Of a DNA stretch of 64,000 nt, positions 12,961-64,000 are shown in pieces (the stretch's first letter is position 1; every line of letters starts with the position of its first letter). The position numbers and the translations under genes were made by a program. Location of the stretch: contig VJWM01000301.1 in the NCBI GenBank assembly GCA_010909165.1, positions 49,334-113,333 of the forward strand, given 5' to 3'. The notes beneath the pieces are model-generated. The model made no database searches, was not told the origin of the DNA, and was given only the letters and a program-made list of their open reading frames with translations. The DNA comes from Anthoceros angustus (Eukaryota; Plantae; Anthocerotophyta).

Positions 12961-14005
12961 TGTTTTGAGGCCGCGGGTCAGAGTTACCTCGAATTGGTAG
13001 GAGCGCTGTGGTAGTGGGCCATATTTTCAGACATCGGAGTGAGTCGGGAGATCCAACCGAATGTATAAGAGACCCTGAGAGTCTCAATGCATAATCATGT
13101 GTGAACTCCGTGTTGAAGCGCGCCAGGTTGGTTAGGAGACGCCCCGATCAAGATCAAACTCGCTCGATGCACCGCTCGCACAAGAAGGCCGGAAGATCCT
13201 CGGATGGTCGAGAGCGAGTGGCCAAGCTCCACGCCTGGAGGGACGGAAGGCAAATCGACGACGCCGGGCGGGAGGTAGGGGTTGCCGCGAAGGCTGAGGC
13301 GGAATCCGGAAGGCGAATCGCCACCCGACTTGTTTTCCGATCTTCTTCCCAAATCCGCTGCCACCAGCGTGTTTCATTCCAAGAGGGGGTCTGTGGTGGC
13401 CCAAGGGGTCTGTGTGGCCCAAGAGGGGGTCTGTGTGGCCCAAGGTGGGGTCTGTGTGACCTGTGAGGAGAGGGAGAGAAGATTTATTTAGGAAGGGGAA
13501 GGTCCCCGAAAGGGTGGGTGAGTGCGCGCTGTAAGGGATTGTGTGTGCGTGTGGGAAAATCGGGAAATGGTTAGGGGAGAGTGGAAGTGAGTGGTGGAAT
13601 CGCGGGGAACTGGCGACGGAGTGAGGCGCCGCGGCACTCGAGGTCGTGGTGCATAGCTCCCGGGAAGGATCCGAACGCGGAAATTCCGGGAAGCGAAGTG
13701 AGGGGGCATGTAGGCGTGTGTATGCCCATAACCCCAAGGTCGCGCCGAGAAGTCATGACAAATAGTCACCATGCGCTAAGGCGCGGTGGGACCCGCCAAG
13801 AACCACCACGCGGTGGCCGAGTCTCCACGGGCGGGTTTGGGTATGGTAGCCGGGAGAGGAGGGGTAGTGAATGACGGGTAAGTCTAGAATCCATAGTTTT
13901 AGAACATCTTGACACAAAACCATTCCCTTGGGATCAATCCGGACTACAAATTACATAGAGGGTAAATGTGGCCTCATGCCTTCGGATGCAAAAACCCATT
14001 CCACA
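12961..14005 (+). repeat. Family G LTR shared between G0 and G1
   Basis: Starts TGTTTTGAGG after purine run AGGGATAGGA (start inferred). Ends CCCATTCCACA, followed by a PBS. The paralog at 40100-41132 (minus) has the same ends. Confidence 0.7.
13381..13458. repeat. ~21-bp tandem repeat x4 within the G LTR
   Basis: GGGGTCTGTGTGGCCCAAG units; only about 2 units in the paralogous LTR near 40645-40685. Confidence 0.8.
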
Positions 14006-40099: not shown

Positions 40100-41215
40100 T
40101 GTGGAATGGGTTTTTGCATCCGAAGACGCAAAGAGGCCACATTTACCCTCTATGTTGTTGTAGTCCTAGGATTCGATCCCAAGGGAATGGTTTTGTGTCA
40201 AGATGTTCTAAAACTATGGATTCTAGACTTACCCCGTCGTTCACTACCCCCTTCTCTCCCAGCTACCATACCCAAACCCGCCACCGTGAAGACTTCGCCA
40301 CCGCAGCTGGGTGGTTCAACCACCGCGGGCGGGTCCCATCCAGTGCCGCCTTCCGCTGGTGACTATTTGTCACCCACTTCCACAGCCCTTGGGGCGGCAT
40401 ACACACGCCACATGCTCACTTCGCCTGTGAGAATTTCCGCTCGGATCCTTCCCGAGCTATGCACCACGACTCTCGAAAAGTGCGCGCCACTCCGCCCGCC
40501 TCAGCGATTCCACCACTCACTTCCCACTCTCCCAACCATTTCCCGATTTTCTCACACGCACACACAATCCCTCATGCCAAGACTCACCCACCCTTTCGGA
40601 CCTTCCCTCCGAATAAATCTTCTCCTCTCCACAGTCACACTCCCTCTTGGGCCACATGCACTTAGACCCTTGGGCCACAGACTCTCGAATGAAACACTGG
40701 TGGCAGCTTGGGAAAGAAGATCGTGGAAGAAAACACCGGCCGCTTCATGATTCGCCCGGCAGTTCCGCCTCAACCTTTCGCGGCAACCCCTACCTCCCTT
40801 CTGACGTGCGTCAGTTACCTTCCGTCCCTCCCAGGCGTGGAGCTTGGCCACTCCGCTCTCGACCATCCAGGGATCTTCCCGGCCTTCTTGTGACGAGAAA
40901 GCGGTGCATCGAACGAGTTTGATGCTGATCAGACGTCTCTAACCAACCTCGCGCATAGCTTCAACACACGGAAGTTCACACCTGTAATTGTCTGTTAAGA
41001 GAGACTCTCAAGGGTCTCTTATACATTCAGCTGTGGATCTCCACAGCTCACTCCTACCAGTGTCTAGAAAATATGGCCCACTACCACGAGCGCTCCTACC
41101 AATTCAGGTAACTACAGCCCGCCCTCAAAACATCCTATCCCCTAACCCAAAAAGAAACCTCTGGCCTATGATGTCGCTCCCTAAAATCAGTAGCTGGCCC
41201 GGGTTGCGCTTAGCC
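40100..41215 (-). mobile_element. Family G copy G2: 3' LTR (40100-41132), PPT and adjacent UTR
   Basis: Reverse complement of 12885-14005. No PBS beyond 40100, so this is a 3' LTR. Continues at 52902-53431 beyond copia A. Confidence 0.8.
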
Positions 41216-42021: not shown

Positions 42022-44475
42022 TCACCGGGGGAGTCCCTTAGTTAAAATATCAGCCACGTTCTCCTTGGTGTTGACATACTTCAGGCAGATAAGTCCTTGC
42101 TCTACTGCTTGCCTAATGAAGTGGAACTGTATCTCAATATGTTTTGATCTCGCATGCAAAACTGGTTTGTCATAGTGCGATTGCACACTGACGATCACGA
42201 CGTAGCATAGCGGTTGTGCCCATGAAATCTCATCTAGGAAGGCCCGGGCGAAACTTCTCGTCGCTGTGGATAGGGCCCCATACTCCACGACGAGATCAAT
42301 CTGCCGTGAGTCTCTTTTCGATCGCTAACCAACTAACACAACCTTGTAGTAGTACATGAAGTCGCAATGGACTTTCTTGAGTCTACATCACTTGCCCAGT
42401 CTGCATCTGAGTAGGCCATGAGAACGCTGGAACTCTGCTGCTGATAAGTAAGGCACATGTCCTGTGTCCCTTTCAAATATCGCAGAATTCTCTTAACTGC
42501 AACCCAATGCTTAGGTCCTGGATTTTCTAAGAATCGGGATACTATACCTACAGCTAGTGATATGTCCGGTCTTGTCCATCCAGCAAGGTATAAGAGGCTG
42601 CCTACTGCTTCACGGTAGGGGACAAGGGACATCTCAGCCTTTTGAGAGGCAGTAACAGGGCAATCCTCTATTGACAATTTCTCACTAGTTGAGACAGGGG
42701 TAGACACTGGATTCACATTTTGTAGGTTAAATTTGGTGAGCAGTTGACGAATAAAATGTGCTTGATGAATGGTGACTGAGGACCTATCAGGAGAGAAGGA
42801 AAACTGGATTCCAAGTGCAAATTTCAGAAAGCCCACATCGGTCATGTCCCATTCCTGTGACAGTGCCTGCTTAATATGGGTAAGGATTGTCTGATCACTG
42901 GCAAAAAGAAAATTTTCATCTACGTACAGTGCTATAATGCAAATGTGTTTGGACTGCTGCAGCACATAGACACTAACGTCTGCTGTAAGTGGGATGAAAC
43001 CTAGTGATCTCAACTTCTTGTCTGCCCTGGAATTCCAGATACGTGCCGATTGCTTTAGTCCATTAATTGATTTGAGTAGCTTACATACCTTGGTAGGGTC
43101 TGTCACATAGCCTTCCGGTTGCTGCATATAAATAACGTCGTCAAGGGGTCCATTGAGGAATGCTGTCTTTACGTCCATTTGGTGGACTAACAATTTGTGC
43201 TTGACAGCATAGCATAGAAGAATTCGCATAGAAGTAGGCTTGACCACAGGGCTAAAAGTTTCATGGTAGTCTAGGCCTTGAACTTGAGTATAGCCACGTG
43301 CTACTAACCTCGCTTTATATCTTGCTACACTGCCGTCAGGATTCAGCTTGAGTTTGAACACCCACTTGGAAGTGATAGGTTTCCCGTCCTTGGGTAAGGC
43401 AACCAGTTCCCATGTGTTGTAGGAAATCAGGCTGTTGTATTCAGAGTCTATGGCCTTTTGCCATTCTAAAGATTCTGGACCCGTTAGGGCTTCTTTGTAA
43501 GACATGGGTGTATTTGGTGGATCTATTAGTGATGACGCCACAGAGTTGGCAAAGGCAGCAAGATTAAAACGTGGTTGTTCTTCTTGAACAGGTGCAGTAA
43601 TGGTCTCTTTGGATCTGGATGTAAGGGTATCTCCAGCATATAGGAGGCTCTGGCCAACTGGGCTCGAGGACGGCGCGCCCCGTAGAACGCTCTAATAGGT
43701 ATCCGACATCCGCTTGTTCGTGTTCAGTTGTATAGGGGCAATCTGTACACCAGCCGACCAAATCTAATCGGTTTTTTGTTGACTCAGAGGATGTTCAAAG
43801 AACGACGCTCGTGAATGTGGGCTGCATTGCTTTGAGGAATAGGTTCGTGATCGTGCACAAAGTGAGTGGAATGTCGAAAGTATCAATGTCAGGGAATACT
43901 GTAAAGTCGTCACTGTTGAGAAGGTCATCGGAGAAATGGCCATGAGCTGTAGGTTGTGGCAGTGGAGTATGACTATGAGAGGACTGGATATGAGCTTGGA
44001 GGATGAAACTCTCATTGAAACTAACACTACGTGCTAGGGTTAACTGTCTGGTAGAAGGGTTGAAGAGTCTGTAGCCTTTGGATTGCTCTGAGTAGCCGAC
44101 AAAAACAAGTTTAATTGCTCGGTCATCCATCTTACCTCGCCTGTCTTCTGGAACATATGCATAGGCTGCAGAGCCAAAAATGCGAAGGTGACTGATACGA
44201 GGTTTGTGTCCTGTCCACCTCTCAAACGGAGTATAGTCATAAAGAGGCTTAACAGGTAGCCTGTTCTGAGTATAGTTAACAGCTGCAATGGCTTCAGCCC
44301 AATAACCACGTGTCAAACTAGCCAGTGATAATGTAGCTCGACATCGTTCTTGTAAGGTTCGATTATAATGTTCAGCGTAAGAGTTCTGTGGAGGGTGATA
44401 AGGCACTGTAAGTTGATGTAGGATGCCTTTAGCCTTGAGCAGTGTCTGGAAATCATGGCTCAAATATTCTGGTGC
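42022..44475 (-). CDS. Copia A pol, 3' part (integrase C-terminal half, RT, RNase H)
   Basis: ORF 43795-44493 with HQLTVPYHPPQNSYAEHYNRTL; 402-aa ORF 42333-43541 with YKARLVARGYTQVQGLDYHETFSPVVK, QMDVKTAFLNG and IALYVDE; ORF 42022-42288 with RSKHIEIQFHFIR and ENVADILTKGL. Confidence 0.92.
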
Positions 44476-47400: not shown

Positions 47401-50001
47401 CAACGTTCTTCACCATTACCTCACCAGTACCCAAACTGCTACCCCCCTCCCTGATGCCAGCCTTTATGGACACTCCTTCGCTGATTCCCCTCTTGATCTT
47501 GAGGGGGCCCACTACGACCCAGATGATCTACAATCTCAAGCTGTGAATCAGCAATTTTCCATCCCAGGTCCTGCACCCATTGTCCAACCAAAGATCACCG
47601 CCCCTTCTTCCGTACCCACACTAGAAGCAGTATGCCACTAGGGTCGCAGCCACAACTCATCTACCAACCTCCCGATTCAAGTCAGCACACAGAGGTAAGC
47701 GAACTCCTAGGTATTCCCGAACCTCACTCACCACCGCAGAACCCGAATAAAGAACTCCCTGCATCATCTCGACATAGGCCTCCCGAGACGAATGGAGCCC
47801 CATATGTACCGGAGATATCCTCATACAAGACAAATTGCAGAAGCAGACGCCTGGACACACAACAGCAAAGAAGTTCAAATAGCTCTTCATCAAGCATTAT
47901 CAATCGAAATGCAAGGAGTCCCACTCACAATAGAAGAGGCTTTCAAATCTCCAGAGTGGACAGCAGCTGCAAAAGATGAGTATGACTCTCTTATAGCAAA
48001 TAAGACTTGGGAACTGATAGACTTGCCTCCAGGCAGAAAGCCCATATCCTGCAAATGGACATTTCGGAGGAAGCTCAACCCGGACGGCACAGTGTCAAGA
48101 TACAAAGGACGACTGGTGGCCAGAGGTTTCACTTAGATCCCTGGGTTCGATTATGAGGAGAATCAGTACCCCTTGTCAAATCAACTTCCATTCGAACTCT
48201 TCCGGCCTTTGCGCACATCACCACCTCGATATTCATCAAGTCGACGTAAAACAAAGATTCTTATACGGAACACTCAACGAGGAAATCTATATGTTGCAAC
48301 CACCAGGGTTCGCGAAGGATAACAAGAAGGTTTGCCGACTCTTGAAGTCACTGTATGGTCTCAAACAGTCAGCCCAAGTATGGAACGAGACCGTAGATCA
48401 TTACTTGAAAAAATGCGGATTTGTTCCCCTAACTGCTGACTCAAGTGTTTACCTCATGAGAGATGGGGAGAAGTTCGCCATTGTGACACTTTATGTCGAG
48501 ACAATTTCGTCTTCGAAATGATTCGCTCATGTAAGGTAAAAGACCTTTTATCCAAGGAGTACAAGTTTCAATTGACACCGGGCACGCCTCGGCAATTTGA
48601 GAGAGACCCTAAGAACCACACGTTCTTCATACATCAAGCACACTATGTGGAGCAACTTCTTGAGCGATTCAATCTCAAAGACGCAAAGCCCGTCGCAACA
48701 CCCATAGCAGTGATAAAGTATCGAGAACCGCCTACCACACTAGAGGAGCGTATGGAGATGATCAACATACCATATAGCGAGGCGAGGGAAGTATTCGACT
48801 TATCTATATGGACTCGGACGACGTGGCTCAGTCACAACATTGCTTCACGATATCCGCCAAACCCCAGTGGCACACATCGACACATGTTAAGCGCATTTTG
48901 AGATATCTGAAAGGCACCAAGACGCTCGGACTTTACTACAAAGGTGACCCTAAACACAAACTTACACTCACTTCTTTCTCGATGCGATCAAGGAGACCCG
49001 ACGCCGATCCACACGCCATCGTATGATGATGAATGGAGGATGCATTTCATGGGCGTGTAAGAAGATGCCCACACTATGCCTCTCTTCAACTGAGGCAGAA
49101 TACGCTGCAACCTCACCGGCGCGAAGAAACTCGTGGATCGATAATTCACGAAAGACATTGGAGAGGAGCGACGCCCACAATTCTTGCAGACAATCATCAA
49201 AATAGCTATGACTTTGAACCCCGTTTTGCACGCACGGACTAAGCACGTAGAGATTCAGCACCACTTTATTAGGCAAGTAGTCGCTAGTAAGCAAGTAGCA
49301 CCGCAGATGTAAATAACGATAACACGGCAGATCTCATGACCAAGGGATTGTCGAAGCATCTGCATGAAAGGAACGTACAGGGTATTGGACTTATAAGCAA
49401 GGAGACTTATCTAGGGTTCGCACCCACCGCCAGCAAATTTTAAGGGGAGCTCAAAGATCGACAGGAAGAGGAGTCTTCGCAGCTTGAACATCCATCTTCA
49501 CCAACTCAACAGCTTTATATGGCCGCAGAGGTGTTGATGCGCGATCATGAACTCTTCCATACCGACGCCTTCCCAAGCCGCATGTGATGCTCCAGTCCTT
49601 TTCACCGGACTTCTTCGAATCCTGCCTAGGAACTTCCTGCTCGAGACTTGCGATCTTGTTGCTCACAGCTGAGATTAGGTGACTCATGAACTGAAGGAAC
49701 CACCAGATGCTTGATAAGATGCTCAAGTAGAACGGAGGAACGCTGCAAGATGGCAGCCCATCCGAGCTTCAAATTAGAACCAAGTCACGACGAGGGGAGT
49801 GTTGATGCACAAGTGATTTAGGTGTTCACAGACTAAGTTCTAGGGCACGTTCATTAGGGTTATTTACTTGTACGTAGTTAAGCGCTTTAAGCATTTAACG
49901 TTATTCATTAGTAGCATACAACTTACTATTGTAAGCCTACTTAAGGCGTGTCATGTACACAAGTAAATTACTTCTTCTTCATTATTCTCTCTACTTTTAG
50001 A
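44481..50001 (+). mobile_element. Full-length Ty1/copia element C nested in the integrase of element A
   Basis: LTRs 44481-44687 and 49800-50001. Perfect TSD GTTGT at 44476-44480 and 50002-50006. PBS TGGTATCGAGC at 44688. PPT GAGGGGAG at 49792-49799. Confidence 0.93.
45240..49420 (+). pseudogene. Copia C gag-pol (frameshifted)
   Basis: gag GSDYDIWQMRIQALLEEHDL; knuckle GHYENECRK; protease WFLDCGATTHIC; integrase SFGGHSYFLTFMDEWSRY; RT ISCKWTFRRKLNPDGTVSRYKGRLVARGF; RNase H LSSTEAEY. Confidence 0.9.
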
Positions 50002-50006
50002 GTTGT

Positions 50007-51804
50007 CACTACGCAAGTGCTTAATACGCTGACCAGATTGATTTTCTGCCATGAGCATATACTCTAGAAACTTCTCATATGTTTGGCGTCTTGTATGCAG
50101 AAAGTAAAGACAGCAAAAATGGCTCCATTCGTCCAGAAAAGTAAGGAAGTACACTGCTCCACCGAAAGAGTGGGTGGACATTGGTCCGCATATGTCGGTA
50201 TGTATCACATCCAGCAATCCTTTGGCTTTAGTAGGACTGGGGTCATTATAAGGCTTCTGTGCCAGTTTTCCTATCTGACAGTTCTCACAGAACAATGTGT
50301 CTTGGACTTTAAAATTGATGGGGTCTTTGTATAGGTGTGGCTTTTGCACTAGGTGTCTAACATACGTAAGACTAGGGTGATAGAAACGACAATGCCAGAG
50401 AAGTGTACGATCAACGTAGGGCCTTGCATCAGCAACTAGGGTCTGAGCCACAGGTAAGGTGTCAAATTTGTACAAGTCATGGTAAAGGATACCTTGTGCT
50501 ACTCCTTGGCTGACGTCAGTGCTGGATGTGATGATGCAACCTGCAGGTGTAAAACTAACATAGAGGTTGTGGTCAGCAACTAGTCTCTGCACAGATAGAA
50601 GATTCTTGGTCATACTGGGAACATGTAGCACGTGCTGTAACTGAAGTGATTCACCACCTCTGAGAGGTAAAAGTACTTCTCCATGACCGGCTATGGCTAG
50701 ACCACTGTCATCTCCAAGTAACACAAATTGTCCAGGCAGAATATCAGTGTATGTGAGAAAACTGGTTCTCGAGTAACAAATGTGGTTAGTTGCTCCTGAA
50801 TCCAGGAACCACATGGTTGCATCCGCTTTTGTTAGAGTCAAACAAACTGCCAATATTGCTGGTGCCTTGTTGATGCTGTGAGAATTGCTTGACTGGCCTC
50901 TGATCACAACATGTGATTCCCCTGTAGGCTGATCACGGCGAGGCTCTCCAGCACGTTTCTTCCTACATTCACTTTCGAAATGACCAGGTATTCAGCACCA
51001 GTTACAAGTACCTTTCTTTCTTTGTGATGTAAAACCAGAAGGTGCTGAAAAGGGCCGTCTTGACTGGAAGGGTGGTCTGTAAGAACCTCTTCCTCTGCCT
51101 CGTCCTCTTGTTGTGAAGAGGATATGGGAAGATTGCTGGTGCTGTTGGTTGCGTCCTGAAGCAACACGACTAGATTCTTCCTCAAGAAGAGCACCTATAA
51201 TCTCAGAAACTGTTGTAGATGCCTGGCCATCTCCTACTGCCTTGCGCATAATGGAGTTCTGAGAACTAACGAAAGCTCCGTAGCTAGCAGGCAGTGATGT
51301 AAGAAGAACAACTGCTGCTTGGTCCTCTGGAACATCAGTCCCACACGAGGATAGCTTTGCACGCAAGGTACGAAAGCGATTGATGTGATGCTCTATGCTA
51401 TCAGAATCTTTCATCCTGAGAGCATAGAAATATCTTGTTGCATTAAAAATCGACATGGGATCTTTTGCTGCAAACATATCTCTGAAAACCTTCCAGACTG
51501 CTGCTGAGGTCGTTTGACCTTGTGTATGATGCATCATATTCTTGTCCAAAGGTCGACAATTTCTTGCTCGCCTGCTTTTGCCCAAGCGTACCGCAATTGA
51601 CGGAGGAGAGGCAGATGCCGGGTTTGTGGACTTGCCAGTGACGACATCCATCAGGTCATGTTCCTCCAGCACTGCAGTCAGTCTCATTTCCCAGACTGGG
51701 TAGTCTGATCCGTTGAAACGATCCTTGTCTTTGATGTCCACTTTAGTTGTGTTGTTAATTATTGTATTGGATGCAGTTCCAGATCCTGATCCTGATCCTG
51801 ACAT
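50007..51804 (-). CDS. Copia A gag, protease and integrase N-terminal half
   Basis: ORF 50992-51891 with KDRFNGSDYPVWEMRL and KKGTCNWC; ORF 49951-50907 with WFLDSGATNHIC, LLWHCRFYHPS and DVIHTDICGPM ending KHLRSDN at the C insertion, resuming as APEY at 44475. Confidence 0.92.
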
Positions 51805-52901
51805 ATTTAATGGCTGTAGATTAAGGTCTCTAGGCGAGGTAAGAAGATAAAATGGGTCAATAGGTATTCTGTGGGGTGGTGACCACATCAACTATAGTAG
51901 TATATTTTCTACAGAATGGTGAGATCATCGCCAAAAAGCTTAGCGAGTGATGTGAGGACAAGCTCTACAGGTTCTGACATGTGTTTGCTGACAGGTTTGT
52001 GTGTATGTGATTGCAGCAGTTTTCTGGGTGCAGTTCTAGGTGCAGCATTAATGTTTGTGACTAAACCTCCGTACGACCGGCGATAGTGATGAACTTTCTG
52101 GACTAGAGAAACTATCTGCTCTCTGAGGTTGTTGATTTCCTTCCTGTGCTTTAGCTTGTCAGAAAGTGCGGTGTTCTGTGCTATAGAAAGTCTAATCCTA
52201 AGATCATGTATGTCCCGTGTTGGTAATGATGGCTGACAAGTGCTAAGTTTTCTACATGCAGCGTGACAGGGACAATATGGTGAGAGTGCTATTTCCCGAT
52301 TACAGCAACAAGTTTGTGTCTAGGGGCAAACTGTAGGACATGGACAAGATGTCCTAGTAGTGCGCCTCTTGCTGTTCCTCGTCATGACACGCTGCTCAGG
52401 TATTTTGTCGCTGGCTGCGTTTCCATTGTGAGATTAATCGCCAATGCTCTCGTAGCATTTTGAACATCAAGTCTTGTGCCTGCCTGTGGTTGTGTGATCA
52501 CCGGTGATTTCGACGGACAGCCGATGCGCCGCTTTTCTCCATCGTGCCGAGACTGATCGGCAACAAAATTTCTTTCAAACCCTAGCCGGGTGGCGTGGTG
52601 TATATTCGCCTTCAATCAAGCAATCAACTGGTCGCACGCCATCATGCCAGATGGCTAGCAAACATATAGGGCTTTGATACCATAATGTAGTCGATTACAC
52701 GAGGATCTCGAAAAGCGAAGCGCAGGAGCTGAGGGACGACACCGCAAGGTGCACACATGTAACAATTCGCTACTATCAATTACAAAGAAAAAGATGTCTT
52801 ATAGTACAATGTAAGAGTTAGGTACGCCTCACATAACCTACGCGATTTTAGTTTATATAAAGCTAGGGTTATGGTTTGATAAATACATATCTAATATAGT
52901 C

Positions 52902-53599: not shown

Positions 53600-54963
53600 A
53601 TGGCGGAACTCTTGACCGACCAAGAACTTGCCGCCGCCAAGGCCAAGTTCTTAGCTGACCAAAAGGCTAAATGGCTCGAAGACGAGCAAGCCAAATGGGA
53701 AAGAGAACTGGAAGAAATAAAGGAGAAGGAGAGAGCGAAAAGAAAATCTGACTTAAAAACCCTAGTGGTTCAAGCAGATAATTTCAAAGACAAAGATAGA
53801 TTCAATGGAAGAGGGTATGACGTATGGCAAAGTCGTGCCCAAGGAGTGCTACGTAGTCGTGACTTGTGGGAGATCGTCAACGGCACCGAGCCTCGGCATG
53901 CTTGGGACTCAGATGCACAAGATGTTTGGGATGCCAAGGACCAGAGAGCTCGAGATGTTTTAGTTGGTGGCCTTACCGAAGCGATGGTGCGACAAGTTTC
54001 CGAAGCAGACACCTCCTGTGATATGTGGGAGCGCCTAGCTCAATTATACGCCTCCAAAGATAGAATGAGCTTATTGACCGCTACCCGCCATCTCCATACC
54101 CTGAAAATGAAGGAGAATGATTCCATTGATCGCCATATAACTGCTTTCCGCGTCGCCAAAAATAATTTTGAAGCGTCATCTCAAGAGAAGCTCTCCGAGA
54201 AAGCAAAGATTTATTGCTCTCCTTGCCTCCTTACCACCCTCCTATAGGGCCTTTGTGACAACACAAAATGCTGTCCTTAGAGCCGCACAGAAAGAGAAGA
54301 AAGCAAATGGCTCCGCCACACTGGACATGAGTGTCACTGAATCAATTGGAGCCATCATACAGGAGGATGCCAGTCGTCGACAAGAGAATCCTAGATCCAC
54401 CAAGCAGCAGGTGATGTTTACAGGATAAGGTAGAGGAAGAGGACGCGGCAGACCCTTTCCTCCTAGGCCGAATCTTGGTCAATATTCTCCGACTGGAGAA
54501 AACTCTTCTTCTGCAAAAGGTAACAAGAAGAGTGGAGTTATATGTAATTGGTGCAGAATGACAAATCATATGGAGAAGGACTGTAGAAAAAAGAAGAACA
54601 GCGAGCCTAGGAAGGAGGCCACCCCTGGAGCACATGTTGCCATGAAGAAACAATCTTCAGCAACACCATCAGCTCTCACTGTCTGCTTGGCATCATCCAA
54701 GCCCTCAAACCAAAATTGGTATTTAGACAGTGGAGCAACATCACATATCTGTCACAACATAAACTCTTTTGAGTCTTACTCGCCCGCCAAAGGACATCAA
54801 ACTGTCATATTGGGTGATGATCATAACCTCACTATCTCTGCTGTTGGTTCAGTTGTTCTCAGATGCTCTACAGGCCAAGTTCTCTCACTTTCTCATGTCC
54901 TCCATGTACTATCCATGTGTAAAAACCTAGTGTCCGCCGCCAACTTATGTTCAGAACATAGCA
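53600..54963 (+). pseudogene. Truncated copia D gag-protease
   Basis: ORFs 53600-54247, 54168-54428 and 54558-54977: KDKDRFNGRGYDVW, knuckle CNWCRMTNHMEKDC, protease WYLDSGATSHIC. Cut by an E LTR. No own LTR or PBS seen. Confidence 0.88.
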
Positions 54964-55576: not shown

Positions 55577-56865
55577 TGTGGAGCTACTTTTGCTAGCGGA
55601 CTAGCCGGGCGCACACTAACCCAGGGTCGATGTAGTACGGGGGTTCGCTCCACAGGGAATGGACTCGTGCTTATTCTGCCTAAGCTCTACAATTGGGCAC
55701 CTGAACGGACTTCATCATGTTGGGTCCGGCGGTTCCACAACCCTAAGTGTGTGCCCCTTCACAACTCGTCGGGCCAGACGCGCAGCCACCGGACCTTCCC
55801 ACAAACCTCGCCCGGGTGTCTCCAGACCACCGAACAAAGTTTAGCGACGCTGCCTCCGCCAATCCACGACTCCAAAGGCCCCGCCCTCAACTCCTCGTCC
55901 GCCACAACTCCACCTCAACACACACGCCGCAACGCGACCCTCCTCCTGCACCCATAGCTCGTTTTCGCAACACCAGCACGCCGACGTATTCACACCGGAC
56001 CCCCCTTGCTCCTTCCGGCTGCTTCACGTTCTGCGGAGAAGTGGCTTCGCAGCCTGCAACCCCACAGCCTCCATTCTAGCAGCCTCCACGGATGGCTTCT
56101 GCCCAGCAAGGTCATCCCCAAGCGCCCCCTAACCCTTCCTACCGGGTTCACGCTCTGGAGAAGTGGCCACCAGATCCCACAAACCTCCTCCGTTCGTGAC
56201 CTCCAAGGTTAGTCTCGCACCCAGAAATCACCATGAGCACCTCCCGAGCTCAGTCCAACCTCGTGCACCCATCAAGCGTTGGCGGAGCTCGTCACCGTAG
56301 CTCTAAACACATCCCCTACCACCAATTAATCCTGCACGGTGACGCAGGAACTCGCCCGCCCCCGAGCAAAGGCAAGAGCACACTGAGCGCAAGATGGTAC
56401 CCGGATAGTTCACCTCTTGCGCCAGCCTTTATATCCCCACACCCTAATCTAACCCACCCATGTATGTACCTTAACCCCGGATCGTGGTAACCGCCGCACG
56501 GACTTCATTCCGAACGCCCGGTCGGCCGGACTTACTCACGAACGACGCAGGGTCGGACTTCATCTGGCCGAACGCCGCCGGACTTATCTGTCGAACGCCG
56601 GCCCGGACTATTCACGAACGCCGGGCCACCGGACTTACTCCGTCAGACCTCGCTCGGACGGACCACTCCGTCGGACCTCGCCCGGACGGACCACTCTGTC
56701 CGCCAATGGACCAAGGGTCTATGGACTGCATTGTAAGTGCAATCTAGCCAAAAATGGCCTTATTGGCTAACTCCACCCTATTCCTGCTAAGAAGTGACAA
56801 CGCAAAAAATAAATCAAGCCCAAAACAAGTCGCCGAGGTCATGTACACCGGATGGGCGCTCCACA
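55577..56865. mobile_element. Solo LTR of a separate family (F), 1289 bp, inside the H LTR
   Basis: Perfect 8-bp inverted ends TGTGGAGC...GCTCCACA. Flanks CCTGA/CCTGC (4 of 5 TSD match). Host LTR resumes colinearly. Internal CCGGACTT..CGAACG repeats at 56496-56700. Confidence 0.75.
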
Positions 56866-57133
56866 CCTGCAATTGTGTTGTGTCGTTGTAGGTCGAGAAT
56901 TGGTGATTTTTTCCGGAGCAGTGCAAGTGGTGCAGCTGCTGTAAGAGGGAGAGTAGAGGGCGCCTTGCTTATTTAGAAGGCTGAGGTAGGGTGTCACTGC
57001 AGGTAGCGATTGTTTTCCCCAAGACCCGATCTTTCACACAAGTCTCATGGGACGAAACCCAACGTATAAAACGACAAAGGATAAGTGTCAGCTAGAGGGG
57101 AAGCCCAAGCCCCGGGTTTTCCTCCCACATTTT

Positions 57134-57151
57134 TGGCGCCGTTGCCGGGGA
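57134..57151 (+). promoter_or_regulatory. Primer-binding site complementary to the tRNA-Asp 3' end (Athila type)
   Basis: TGGCGCCGTTGCCGGGGA, 4 nt after the LTR end CCCACA. Confidence 0.9.
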
Positions 57152-59086
57152 TTTGTTGCTGAAAGATTGAAGTCTTGTGGTTTCCATCGCTAGGATGCAG
57201 AATGTTTGTGGTTCGGGAGAGACTTGAGAAGGAGATCTAGTGACCATATGTTGTAAAGAAGGAGCATCACGCCCTCTAAACGTCGTGAGTGTGTGCGGAT
57301 GAGAAATTGCAGACACTAAGGGGTGTGAGTTGCTTTCTCCTTAACGACTGTGTGTTGGAGATCATGAAGATGCTTGCAGATGTCTGGTAGGGGAAAGACT
57401 TGAGGAGAAGAGCATAGAAGATCACCCCCACCCGTCACTGCAAGGGATTTGAGAGCTGCACGAAGAAATCGATTGAGAGAAGAGACCGCTACTGCCGCCA
57501 CCCGTCGACAGCAGGAAGAGAACGAGTTACGGGCACTCGAGGAGGAGGCTATCTTCGCTCAGGGTTGTAAAGAAGAGAACGGTGAGCAACAAGAGGACGG
57601 ATCCGAGGAAGACGGTGCGGAGTTCACCCTCCCCTGAGCGCGGTTGGCACTTCACGACCGACGCAGGGCCTTCGCAACGCTGGGCCTTTCGAGGCGGTGA
57701 GTCCACCTCGGTTTCGAGCGAAACCGACAGTGATGAAGAGGCCGTCAGTAGTGGGGAGTTCCAAGCTTGGTCTTAGGACCTAGTCAACGCCGATCGCATC
57801 GCCGCCAACATAGAGGGAACTGCTGGCGAGGGGCGCCGACGCCAGAACGGTCGAGGCCGCGATGAGACCGCGAGGCCGTGGCGCCCGACGCGAGTCCGCT
57901 CGGCGTAAAGGGAGGCGCCGAGTTGGGCCGAGATGCGCGCTCCACTTTCTCGATCGCGCCGAGGCGTGAGGTCTGCTCATTTAAGGGTTGCTGCCCAAAT
58001 TTATAACTCTTCTTTCTCTCTTCTTCCATGTAATTGATAAGGTAACACAAGTTTTGATTTTAGCTTTCGCTTGGTAAAAGTCCCAATTTTCAACTTTTAA
58101 CTGCTTTTTTGGACGTTATTGTCTCGATCTGTGAGGACATATTCTATTGGGGTTGACGGGGTGTAAACAGGTGATCCCGGTGGTGCATAGTCTTCGGAGT
58201 AATGCTTTTTGATTTGCTCGTTGTACGGTCCAGATAAAAAGTTTATCATCTCAAAGATTTCGTCCAGACGTGAATATTTCTACAAGCAATTTTATTTGTT
58301 AGTAATTGAAGTTTTTAAAATTTCAAACAAGCAATTTAATATACTAACCTCAAACAGTGCAAACAACTCCTTTTGTTTCTTCGATAACTACAAACGAAGG
58401 TGGAACAGGTCAGTAAGTTACCTCCATTTCAAGTCGAAGTACGTCCTGCTCGGTAAATACCTTTCTGACTAACAGATCACCACTTCGTTTCAATCAACTG
58501 TGAGGAGCTGGGAGTGTATTGTGTGCTTGTCTCTTGTAAGCCGTCATCTGGTATTGCTGTTTATTAGCGATTTGGGGTTTGAAGGTTATTCTTTTTTCTC
58601 TTTAATGTCTAAACGCTCACTTGCTGAAAAGGGCTTTGGTGTTTGTAGGGGGCTTCAACGCTAGGAGGGTTTGCCCCAACTTTCGGAAAATCTTGCTGGG
58701 AAAAGCATTTTGTGGTTTATTGTCTGATGTAGTGGTGTTGTAGTTTAATTTTGTCTTTCCCAGCTGGGTTTAAAATGGGTAAAATGCATCAGCTTTTCCG
58801 AATGCCTTTTTTTAAACCGTGCATGTCAAGAATGATAAGGCGAAACATGTTTGTTCGTCTCATTATCAAAAAGCAAAGGGCAGTCGGGCATGGGTTTCGT
58901 CGTCAGATGTTGTTGTTGTCTCAGTTGTTACCATCGCCCTTGCTTCTTCGATCATCTGATCATCAACTTCTAAACCTTCCAGCAGGTTTTATCTGGAATT
59001 GTGTTTTTCACAAGTAAGTTAAACAGTGTTGTTTTGCTTTGGTTTGTTTTTCTTGTAGTTCTTCTCTCACAGCTTTTTTCTCACAG

Positions 59087-62000
59087 ATGGCTCCAAAAAG
59101 AAAACCTACTGGACCTGCTGGACCCGGGAAGAAGCAAGTACCCATGTCTGAAGTCATGTCAAAGCCCTTTACAAGACAACGAGTCAAGTCTGCCATTAGA
59201 CATACTGCAACTCATCCTCTCAATGATGACGGTAAAATCGATGGCGTTCTTGTCCATAGTGAGGGAACGTATTTGGTTCCAGTGAAGGAGTGTCCAAAAT
59301 TGCCAAGGCGATTTTCTTCTAAAATGGCTGCTCGGCGCGCAGCCGAGTTTGCTCAAAAGAGAAGAAGATTGGACACTCGTCCAGTTCCTTTGGTGGAGGG
59401 CCCTTTGTCCTAAATCACTAAATACGTCCCTGTTACTAAGAGAGGAGTCGATTTTGTTGGTGAAAATGAGCATTTGATCACTAATGACACTATGGTACTG
59501 GATGCTGCGAAGACATGTCTCCAGACTGTAAGTGTCTGTGGGGCGGGTTTCTTGCAGCAGGCCAACGATTGTCCCGCCATGCCATCTGGGGTTGGTGAGT
59601 TTTCCATTCCTGTTATTGCCCCTTATCTAGAAGTGGTCCCTGATCAAGAGTGTCTTGATATGTTTGAAAGATTGAGAGTTTCGGAGATGTGTCCGGAAGA
59701 TGATTTTGTTATGGGCGCTGAAGAGATTGAGGATGAAGTTAATTTCAGAGAGCAAGGGTTTGATCCTTCTGTTCCTGATGGTGCTGTTTTTGATGCTCTG
59801 AGTGGGGGTGAGGATAAGTCAAAGCGTCAAAACAATTGGTATCGAAGTAGATTGAGAGCCTTTATGAAAGTAAGTGGTGTTAGGGGTTGGGATAGAGTAG
59901 TAGAAGATATCCCCCATAAAGATCTGAACTTGATTCTGATACCTTTCTTCCATCAAGTGCGAAATCTGAAGAACAACCTCAGGTTCTCCCCAGAAACGTA
60001 AGTGTGTTTTTTTCATTGAGTATTTCGGTTTTTTGAATCTTTGGCATCTTACCCTTCTCTGTTTTTCAGGTTGATGTCCTTCTTCCGAGGGTTTAATCGG
60101 ATCTTGATAAGAAAGTGTGTTCTCGACCAAAGCCGTTTGGGTTCTGATGTCCCTATCATAAATATGTTCCATGGTATATTTCATGGGGCACAGGCTGCCC
60201 TGGTGGCCTCGATGAAGATCAGCAAGGACCTTGGCATTGTTTCTTGCCGTAAGGAGGTAAAGGTCATTTCTGATGATGATGAGCAGAGGATCCTTGCCCA
60301 CAGGGACCATCAATGTTCGTTTGGTCGTGGCGCTCAAAAGAGGTATATCTGCTCTTTCTTTTGAATTCAGTTGAAGGAAATTGTTGTTTGACCTTGAGTT
60401 CCTTCTGGTGCAGGTGTGCATACTTTTGTATGAATCGGTTTGGGGTTCGTGGTGGAGAGGAGCTACACAACCTCCTGATTATGGATTTCACCTTTGGATC
60501 AGATTCTCGCGGGAATTTTGTCCAGTAAGTTCCTCTTTGTGTCTTGTACAGTCAATGAATTTTTTGGGTATTGGCTGATTTCTAAACTGTTTGCAGGTAT
60601 GAGGAACGAATGTCAAAAAACTATAAGGTTGATATGCGAAACTACCAAAGCGAGCATTTTTGGCCAAAGCTCAAGAATTATGAGTTGGATGTGATCCAAA
60701 CCTTCAGGGCTGTTATTGATCACTCGCCGAAGTGGACTGAATGTGACCGAAATAAGGGTATCCAAGTGTTTTTGTTCAACTCGCCAATTGACAATCCGAG
60801 ATCAAATGTAAGTTTAATCTTTTGTTCTTTCCATCCTTTCCATTCATTGTTCTGTTCATTCATCTGTAAGTCATTCTTTTCTATTATGCACTAATTCGAA
60901 ACTGTTTCACCAGGCATGGTATGCAAAATTGCGTGTTTCGAAAGGGATGCTTTCTCGGTACATGAAGACAATGGCAGAAGCTGCTGGTCTTGAAGGCTAC
61001 TACACCAACAAGAGTTGTCGTGTGACACGTCTAACAATGGCTCAGGTGCCCTCTGATGCTGGCAGAAGTGTTACTGGGCACAAAACAAATGCTGGGTTTT
61101 CAAGGTACAGGGTGTGGTAGCTTATTCTCTTGGTTGTGTCCTTGTTTCTGATGGTTGTGTTCCTTTTTCTGATATCTTGTGGATTCCGCAGGTATGATAG
61201 GTCAGGGCAAGCGAAGCAGGCAGCAGCAGCAAGGGTTCTGGTGCCTGGAGAACGAAGATCTTACAAAGAGTTGCTGACTGAGGAACTCAACCGTATGCAA
61301 GATGATTTGTGTGGTGTGCTTCCATCAACTGTTGTTACTGTGACTCCGGAAGTTGTATTTGCGAGCCAGCCTGAAGATGTAAGTGTGTTTGGGTTTGAGG
61401 ATAAGCTTCTTCAAAAATGTTTTGACATTGTGTAATCGTAGGCTCATGTGAATTTCCCTTGCAAGCTCAAGGCGATCAAACTGTAAGTCAGCAATTTGTG
61501 TGATTTTGCGAATTTGTGGTTTGCAGAATCTCTGCTATGCTTTAGTGTGTTCTGACTGCTTCATTCTCAGGTTATGGCTGTTCCCACACCTGTAGAATTC
61601 ATCATGAAAATGGATTGCAAATCAATGTCAGCAGCATCTCAGATATTGTTGAAAGTTGTATTTTGCGTCCTGAAGTACAGGTTGGTACTCCTTGCTTGTT
61701 TTACCTGTAGGCGTTCTTTTATAATGTGGTTTAACTCCTTATGCTTTGACAGGTAAACAATGCAGTGGTTAAAAGCATTGCTCAGGAAAGGCAAATCAAT
61801 AACAGCAGACTAATGACTGGGACTATTCAAATTGAAAATGATGGCAGGGTAAAGTTTCTGACTGTAGAGTTTGTGACTGTTCATTCATTTGTGACTGTTT
61901 ATTCATTTGGAGTGCTTTTGGCAGATGTCAAATTTGTCTACCAAAGATGCAATCTCAACTACGAGTTTGAGCAGTTTCACTGTTCCAGACTTCAACATTG

Positions 62001-62661
62001 ATGGAGTGGTCTCTGAGTTGCGGCCTACTGTGCCTGCAAGTGATAAAGCGCCCAAAGTGCAACAAGATCGGAATTTGGCCATATTACACGTGACGGGTTC
62101 CAGAATGGGACCGGAATTCAGTAGCTTTAAATATTATCGATATCTCCGAGAACGGGACTTGGAATTTGATAGACAGAAAGTGGAGCGAGAGTTTCAACAG
62201 CGGAAAGAATTGGAGGCATTAATTGAGAGGCAGAGGCGGAAAGCCGTCGAACTCCGAGTATCAAAGCGAGGGAGAAAGCTCTGAAATTCAAAGGCAAAGA
62301 AATGCGAAGGAAGACAACAAAGAAGAAAACCGAGAGCAGAAGGAGCAAGAGAGGCGAGAATGCAAAGTGGAGACATCAGATCTAGAATGATCCTGGGCCT
62401 CGAGAAATTCCCAGATCCAATCATGAAAATCCCTCAGGAACTGTAAGTGTTGTTACACTCCCTTAATTAATTGTACTTGAGTGAAAATTAATGTTTGTGA
62501 TTGGGCAGGTTGTTTTACAAGAAAATGATGAATTTTTTCGAAGTCCTGAACTTCAGCAAGTTCTAGCGAGCTATGATAATGTTGGGGCCTATAAAACCAT
62601 CTCGACGCGTGAAAATTACATTTTTAACTTGTACAATTGTACAGTGAATTTTCCGAAATAA
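59087..62661 (+). CDS. Multi-exon DUF3504/Crypton-type tyrosine recombinase, with one in-frame stop at 59411-59413
   Basis: GT-AG exons 59087-59997, 60070-60342, 60414-60524, 60597-60807, 60914-61104 and 61192-61378 join in frame. They give MNRFGVRGGEELHNL, YEERMSKN, AWY...MAEAAGLEGYYTNKSCR, VTGHKT and SRY. Probable further exons at 61442-61482, 61571-61680, 61753-61848, 61925-62442 and 62509-62661 need at least one frameshift and end IFNLYNCTVNFPK*. The N-terminus MAPKRK is NLS-like. Confidence 0.82.
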
Positions 62662-63209
62662 GGTCAGTATGATTTCTGAAGTAACTTTGGTTATTGCTTT
62701 ATATTTTTGTTTTGCTATTACTCACTTAATTTATATTTTTATGTAGGTCTTATTGTGGCAGTAACGGGGATCAATCTATCCGGGTATTTACTCTATGTTG
62801 TTTTAATTTGACTTTCATTATATTCTGGATATACAGGAAACTCAACAAAGAAAAGGTTTCTTTGTTGGTTTTTTGTATATCCTGGATCCGCATGAATGGT
62901 GTTTAATCGAATATGTTTTACCGCCATTTAGCGATTTGGGATTCTAGGATGAGCTTTCATCTAGATGTACCGTATTCGCTGAGTTAATTTTTTCCACCGC
63001 CGCCATGGTTTCAACAGCTATGGTGGATGCATTTCACCTGACATGCCATATTTTTTACTCTGTTGTAATAGATTTTACTATATTGAGTAAATAAAATGAC
63101 CAAATGGTCAATTCTCTCTCTAGAAATCTATCCTCTAGGCCCCGAAAAAAAACCGAGGTAGCGCGTCGAGGCCCCAGACGAGGCCGCGACTTTACGATTT
63201 TGGGACGGT

Positions 63210-63320
63210 TGTGGAGTGATTTTCTAAACCAAGTGGTCACAAAGAGGCCACATTTACCCTCTTTATCGTTGTAGACTTGAGATTCGTACCCAAGGGAGTG
63301 ATTTCGTGTCAAGACAACCA
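63210..63320 (-). repeat. 3' end of an LTR related to family G
   Basis: Shares TGTGGA, AAAGAGGCCACATTTACCCTCT and CCCAAGGGA.TG.TTT.GTGTCAAGA with 40100-40205. Confidence 0.65.
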
Positions 63321-63540
63321 AAACATAGCCAATCCAACCAAACACGACACACCAAACATCTAGCGCTGACAGCTACTACCCTAACAACACTCACTGTGGC
63401 TATCTTAGCCACGCGACCGATACCCCGAACGGATGACCTTGCTAACTTAGCAACCGCCTCTATTTCTAGAGGGGGGGTCCACCTTGGGATCAGTCGGCTA
63501 TTAGGTGGGTCCTGTCGGGATCCAAGTGGATAAAGCTGAT

Positions 63541-63560
63541 CTCTCTCTCTCTCTCTCTCT
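63541..63560. repeat. (CT)10 microsatellite
   Basis: Direct reading of the sequence. Confidence 0.95.
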
Positions 63561-63624
63561 TACTCATCCACAAAGTTAGATCCACCAATGATTACGCCTC
63601 ATAACTCTTCCCCTCCTCCTCTCA

Positions 63625-64000
63625 CTCTTGCAAGATTTTTATTGCTGCATACCATCTTCTATGCAAAACATGCAATAGTGTTAGTGAAACATTAACAGGT
63701 ACCGTTTCATTATCTGCCAGTAATGCCCAGGCTTTTTCTTCATAAGGTTTAATAACAGGTTTAATTCTGTTAAACCCAATTTAAATCTGATGTAGGCATT
63801 CATGTGGCTGTCTGCTACATGGTGTATCAATTGCTTCACCGTCCATCCACCATCGCGATATGCTGTGTTTAATTGAACTGCATCGAATGTTTGTACAGCT
63901 CTTTCCAGTTCTTCGGGCAGTAACTGAATATCTCTTAACCATTCAATTTTTGCGCCTCAGAAAATGGCTTCAGTTCATATTTCCCAATTGGGTAACGCTC
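63625..64000 (-). pseudogene. yfiT: Bacterial YfiT/BstA-family (DinB superfamily) putative bacillithiol transferase fragment, running off the window edge
   Basis: Manual translation with two frameshifts gives [120 protein letters not shown]. This matches the recognisable YfiT motifs RYPIG, YR.GGWT..Q..HH.ADSHMN.Y.RFKL.LTE, IKPY.E..W and LH.RW. No introns. Confidence 0.88.

Follow-up and report, generated by a model that had tools for sequence, protein, structure and literature searches.

Among described proteins, YfiT of Bacillus subtilis (PDB entry 1rxq) is a metal-dependent four-helix bundle with the DinB fold, and the yfiT (bstA) gene of the bacterium considered here encodes a metal-dependent bacillithiol S-transferase with this fold. 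Two of the three metal-binding histidines are presumably supplied by a WHGKHH..H motif, and the third by an HHxADSH motif. Bacterial-type coding sequences are found inside plant nuclear sequence as the result of established transfers from bacteria to ferns, hornworts, and mosses. Such genes have diverged from living donors, are shared among related plants, are usually intact and expressed, and have become adapted in composition. Bacterial sequences are also encountered as contaminants in eukaryotic assemblies. The genus Hydrotalea is among those recovered from sequenced negative controls, where its presence varied with the batch of DNA extraction kit (Salter et al. 2014, PMC4228153). In the aquatic plant Wolffia globosa, Hydrotalea flava has been reported as an abundant member of the endosphere (PMC13508461).

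We analyzed a window of 64,000 nucleotides from the hornwort Anthoceros angustus (contig VJWM01000301.1). The original prediction had placed an intronless piece of a bacterial YfiT/DinB gene at its far end, joined to plant repeats, and had left two readings, a horizontally acquired fragment or a contaminant in a chimeric join. The yfiT fragment is most likely not a real part of the plant genome. The coordinates of all features are collected in Table 1.

The yfiT fragment and its donor

The bacterial sequence is 364 bases long and runs up to the last base of the window. It represents codons 5-126 of 175, and the ATG is expected at 64012, 12 bases past the window end. The coding sequence is spread over three minus-strand frames, beginning with an 18-residue piece, continuing with a middle piece (KIEWLRDIQ...FKLGLTE), and closing with a third piece that ends in RRWYAAIK. 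The pieces were searched separately rather than as a joined translation. Against the NCBIfam model NF009807 (YfiT family bacillithiol transferase), the middle piece matches positions 21-86 of 172 with a score of 94.4 bits (E-value 6.5e-27), and the third piece matches positions 82-126 of 172 with a score of 43.9 bits (E-value 2.1e-11). Both scores lie below the whole-protein cut-off of 160 bits; the window contains a fragment of a member of this family and no member itself. Residues 14-59 of the middle piece pass the cut-off of the Pfam family DinB_2 (PF12867), with 30.3 bits against 24.8, and that piece aligns to residues 24-87 of 1rxq with an E-value of 1.1e-20. The family assignment in the original prediction is upheld.

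Table 1. Features of the window that bear on the origin of the yfiT fragment. Positions are numbered from the first base of the window.
Feature	Position	Strand	Evidence or comment
yfiT/bstA fragment (Hydrotalea; bacillithiol transferase, DinB fold)	63637..64000	-	NF009807 matches and DNA identity
First frame break, one-base deletion, A6 to A5 on the coding strand	63947-63951	-	Alignments; A6 in all Hydrotalea contigs
Second frame break, one-base deletion, A4 to A3 on the coding strand	63760-63762	-	Alignments; A4 in all Hydrotalea contigs
Substitution CCG to CTG, Pro14 to Leu relative to closest strain	63972	-	Alignment
Substitution TTG to CTG, synonymous, window only	63920	-	Alignment; runs X1, X2, X10, and X14 read the donor base
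Breakpoint, where Hydrotalea identity stops abruptly mid-gene, after codon 126	63636..63637	.	Alignments
76 bases between (CT)10 and breakpoint	63561..63636	.	Matches neither the 6.5 kb Hydrotalea flank nor any other part of the window
CT-rich tract (GA-rich on the minus strand)	63598-63622	.	Sequence
(CT)10 microsatellite	63541..63560	.	Sequence
Plant-side dispersed repeat	63238..63314	.	Copies at 40129-40203 (84%) and 13907-13975 (76%)
Copia-type ORFs	42336-43541; 49954-51891; 53600-54244		RVT_2; Pol_BBD, gag_pre-integrs, rve; Retrotran_gag_2 twice

The reading frame of the window copy is interrupted by two one-base deletions, and its set of metal-binding histidines is incomplete. The first motif (HHxADSH) is present, and the C-terminal motif (WHxxHH..H) is absent. 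In the donor gene the latter occupies codons 156-164, well beyond codon 126, at which similarity in the window stops, so that the loss of the C-terminal histidines was correctly foreseen. The fragment, having lost the last 49 codons and with them two of the three metal-binding histidines, would be expected to have no role in the plant. As predicted, it has no introns, and it is colinear with the bacterial gene.

For the donor search, one genome was taken per bacterial species, and 80 bacterial loci were fetched. The best of these, from Hydrotalea flava CCUG 51397 (L001), shows 97.3% DNA identity over 366 alignment columns, corresponding to window positions 63637-64000. The next best among the 80 reaches 75%, and within the Chitinophagaceae, the family of Hydrotalea, other genera are approximately 70-75% identical to the fragment. 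The 90% protein cluster that includes the H. flava protein (WP_068241327.1, P0001) has eleven variants. One of these, WP_218330340.1 (P0004), whose sources are given as H. lipotrueae or an H. flava metagenome-assembled genome, has the same Phe43, Val46, Ala51, and Val116 as the window, and over codons 5-126 differs from the fragment only at Pro14. P0004 is encoded on ten independent contigs (L089-L098), two from NCBI assemblies and eight from Logan assemblies of sequencing runs. The fragment agrees with these contigs at 362 of 364 bases (99.45%), and all ten show the same pattern, with one mismatch at 63972, another at 63920, and two gaps of one base each. Against NF009807 the intact P0004 protein scores 230.9 bits, above the cut-off of 160, which makes it a full family member, and its alignment with 1rxq extends over the entire length (E-value 1.3e-54).

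Judged by these identities, the donor is a member of the genus Hydrotalea, and the fragment lies within the range of identity found inside a single species. The expectation of a bacterial donor from the Bacteroidota was thus borne out. Relative to H. flava CCUG 51397, the fragment has eight substitutions, which by hand classification comprise five that change an amino acid and three that are silent. We considered these as a possible sign of selection and rejected them, because six of the eight are common to P0004-type strains and the substitutions are therefore strain differences.

Gene order is constant among the Hydrotalea loci (L001 and L081-L098). A CAP-domain gene, a fructose bisphosphatase (FBPase) gene, a gene for a protein of 159 or 168 amino acids, an ABC ATPase gene, yfiT, and a NUDIX gene follow one another, with yfiT overlapping the start of the NUDIX gene by one base. 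In L089 a spacing of 8 bases separates the ABC ATPase gene from yfiT downstream of it, and the gene of variable length encodes 168 amino acids. Beyond the NUDIX gene, on the opposite strand, is a gene for a folylpolyglutamate synthase-like Mur ligase. One of these loci, L088, is a contig of 1,034 bases (JAANSX012276283.1) in assembly GCA_024449895.1, and encodes exactly the YfiT protein of H. flava CCUG 51397. Contig numbering in the millions suggests that GCA_024449895.1 is a very large and fragmented assembly of something other than Hydrotalea, and L088 looks like Hydrotalea contamination of another large assembly.

The breakpoint and the plant side

The original prediction had similarity to the bacterial gene ending near 63625. 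The true end is at 63637, and the bases from 63625 to 63636 are simply open reading frame that extends to the next stop codon. Past the break no trace of similarity persists. When 63400-63636 was aligned locally to the remainder of the gene, the score was 18, where shuffled sequences score 17.9 +/- 2.4, and the whole 6.5-kb Hydrotalea locus gives no better match to the plant side. Because the alignment score beyond the break equals that of the shuffles, the break must be viewed as clean. The GA-rich tract and the (CT)10 repeat described earlier as adjoining the bacterial sequence are both present. Adapter sequences for SMRTbell and Nanopore libraries, in versions that may be inexact and are therefore unreliable, match the junction no better than they match other parts of the window.

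Outside the fragment, the window consists of eukaryotic transposon DNA and has ORFs for copia gag, integrase, and reverse transcriptase. Within the dispersed repeat nearest the junction, the core at 63238-63271 has a summed contig depth of 4157 in one public sequencing run, X1, and so belongs to a very abundant element of that run's plant-like genome. A zone at 56000-58000 is rich in G+C (0.55-0.63, as compared to 0.36-0.46 in the next 6 kb), has no ORF of 150 or more amino acids, and contains, at 56523-56700, imperfect tandem repeats with 23-base and 28-base units. No RNA family from Rfam was found in the window, and look-ups of the exact products of three window ORFs (a 52-residue frameshift ORF, one of 53 residues, and one of 200 residues) returned none on record.

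The fragment in public sequencing runs

We searched public sequencing runs for the words of a 2,001-base query, positions 62000-64000, of which the bacterial part makes up 364 bases. None of the runs contains the plant side; in every one the matches fall short of half of these words. All runs with matching words, twenty from eleven studies, contain only a fraction of 0.12-0.16, as large as the bacterial share of the query. Their sources include drinking-water, biofilm, freshwater, and mine-drainage metagenomes, as well as several named organisms. The fragment is nearly identical, across unrelated data sets, to a microbe that is free-living or associated with reagents.

Contigs from four of the runs (X1, X2, X10, and X14) were aligned to positions 63000-64000. 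Those from X2, X10 (a drinking-water metagenome), and X14 span exactly 63637-64000, with two other letters and with two extra T residues, one after 63946 and one after 63759, that leave the frame intact. Before 63637 they run on with AGTTCGTTCAAAATCCTGTTGTGATAAATC, which is the reverse complement of the continuation of the H. flava gene.

Run X1 has short contigs that resemble the plant repeats of the window, which suggests that it may come from the same plant or a related one. No X1 contig lies at 63544-63611. A contig of 486 bases from this run, with a depth of 2.7, covers 63637-64000 without gaps and with a single other letter, at 63920. It lacks the two extra T residues and so carries both deletions, and, as that single difference implies, it appears to share the Pro14Leu change as well. 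At least 42 bases of this contig before 63637 do not fit the window; the contig departs from it at the junction, and its unmatched end is probably Hydrotalea sequence. Because of this departure at 63637, the deletion-bearing allele appears to exist apart from the junction. The frameshifts therefore cannot be read as decay that followed integration.

The original prediction of two frameshifts was correct in number, but it assigned only one of them to a run of A residues, whereas both are one-base deletions in such runs. Homopolymer deletions of this kind would be errors typical of a thinly covered and poorly polished long-read consensus, or else private variants of a strain. Those in the window fit a thinly covered long-read consensus, and may instead be real variants of the strain carried by the laboratory or by the plant. 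If X1 consists of short reads, the deletions would be real DNA variants, and the part of our explanation that invokes polishing errors would be wrong, while the reading as a contaminant would stand. A 31-base pattern applied to metagenome contigs from JGI found no match for the A5 allele and only one for the intact A6 allele, a comparison without power.

Origin of the join and comparison with known systems

We assign a probability of roughly 90% to contaminant DNA combined with a chimeric join. DNA of a present-day bacterium of the Hydrotalea flava/lipotrueae type would have been present in the plant DNA preparation, whether it derived from water, from reagents, or from bacteria resident on the plant or within its tissue. 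A piece of yfiT would then have become fused to the plant repeat region through a chimeric molecule, a chimeric read, or a false overlap, and the assembler would have retained the join. We infer that the contig continues past 64000 with Hydrotalea DNA. Two observations count against this reading, namely that no adapter-like sequence marks the join, as judged with adapter sequences that may be inexact, and that the 76 bases beside the breakpoint match neither the Hydrotalea flank nor other parts of the window. This reading, stray DNA plus a chimeric join, is favored because near-identical sequence occurs in many data sets of unrelated origin, the gene breaks off cleanly in its middle, the G+C content is that of the donor, and an un-joined form appears to occur in the plant-like run X1. 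Regarding G+C, the fragment has 0.387, the Hydrotalea locus 0.368, and the adjoining 540 bases on the plant side 0.49. Of the two readings that the original prediction had left side by side, the evidence thus favors the contaminant or chimera and goes against a transferred sequence resident in the plant, on the strength of the 99.45% identity, the donor-like composition, and the frameshifts shared with X1.

A genuine transfer would be expected to show divergence that fits residence in the host, and a composition or gene structure like that of the host. The fragment instead differs from ten contemporary contigs at two bases in 364, and it has both the G+C content of its donor and the intronless structure of a bacterial gene. 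A genuine insertion of Hydrotalea DNA into transposon-rich nuclear DNA, made very recently in the germline or in somatic tissue and truncated on integration, is a reading that we consider very unlikely. It would account for a join that lies within ordinary plant repeat DNA, and for the truncation and frameshifts of the fragment, which an inserted pseudogene could likewise show. However, at 99.45% identity to living strains, the fragment can have spent hardly any time in the plant. Both deletions, and by implication Pro14Leu, occur in an X1 contig that departs from the window at 63637, and therefore arose outside the junction. The donor-like G+C content of the fragment and the standing of Hydrotalea as a known contaminant genus also argue against an insertion. 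That a living Hydrotalea associate of the plant has only just donated chromosomal DNA into a nest of nuclear transposons is likewise very unlikely. If true, it would be an exceptionally young insertion, a transfer from bacterium to plant caught essentially at time zero.

It is also conceivable, but very unlikely, that the join post-dates the assembly of reads and was introduced by scaffolding, gap filling, or the merging of contigs, a variant of the artefact in which a separate contaminant contig became attached to one from the plant, with no gap of N residues and perhaps through a false overlap in low-complexity CT-rich sequence. The (CT)10 repeat and the CT-rich tract, 15-95 bases from the breakpoint, would be suitable material for such an overlap. 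The Hydrotalea sequence, however, lacks any CT-rich stretch, either at the breakpoint or beyond it, with which to form one, and the breakpoint itself lies 15 bases off the tract rather than within it. An ancient horizontal transfer, inherited in the plant lineage as a decaying pseudogene, would explain only the broken frame and the truncation. The identity figures exclude it, since relative to contemporary contigs the fragment carries just two substitutions over its 364 bases, where other genera of the same family reach approximately 70-75% identity. There is also no shift in composition toward that of the plant.

Under the preferred reading, contamination with a chimeric join, the main value of the fragment is as a flag for assembly quality. 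Hydrotalea DNA appears to be attached to plant contigs in this assembly, and claims of horizontal transfer from this genome therefore need support at the level of reads. As a rule for such claims, near-identity to a living water bacterium, when combined with homopolymer frameshifts, should be taken to indicate contamination and not a pseudogene.

Among known systems, the YfiT/BstA proteins of Hydrotalea flava and Hydrotalea lipotrueae are the closest to the fragment, which is identical to them in the N-terminal YPIG motif and in the histidine motif HHVADSH. It differs from them in its two one-base deletions and in lacking codons 127-175, which include WHGKHH..H. A NUDIX gene follows yfiT in every Hydrotalea locus, but there is none beside the fragment in the window. 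YfiT of B. subtilis, a distant orthologue, comes from another phylum, and relative to its fold the window copy represents only a broken two-thirds. The fragment is like the contaminants found in eukaryotic assemblies in its near-identity to a water bacterium, in its abrupt break in the middle of a gene, and in its donor composition. Unlike a contaminant on a contig of its own, however, it shares its contig with plant repeats and is physically linked to them. Its likeness to the established transfers from bacteria to ferns, hornworts, and mosses is limited to being a bacterial-type coding sequence inside plant nuclear sequence, and it has none of the traits by which those transfers are otherwise characterized.
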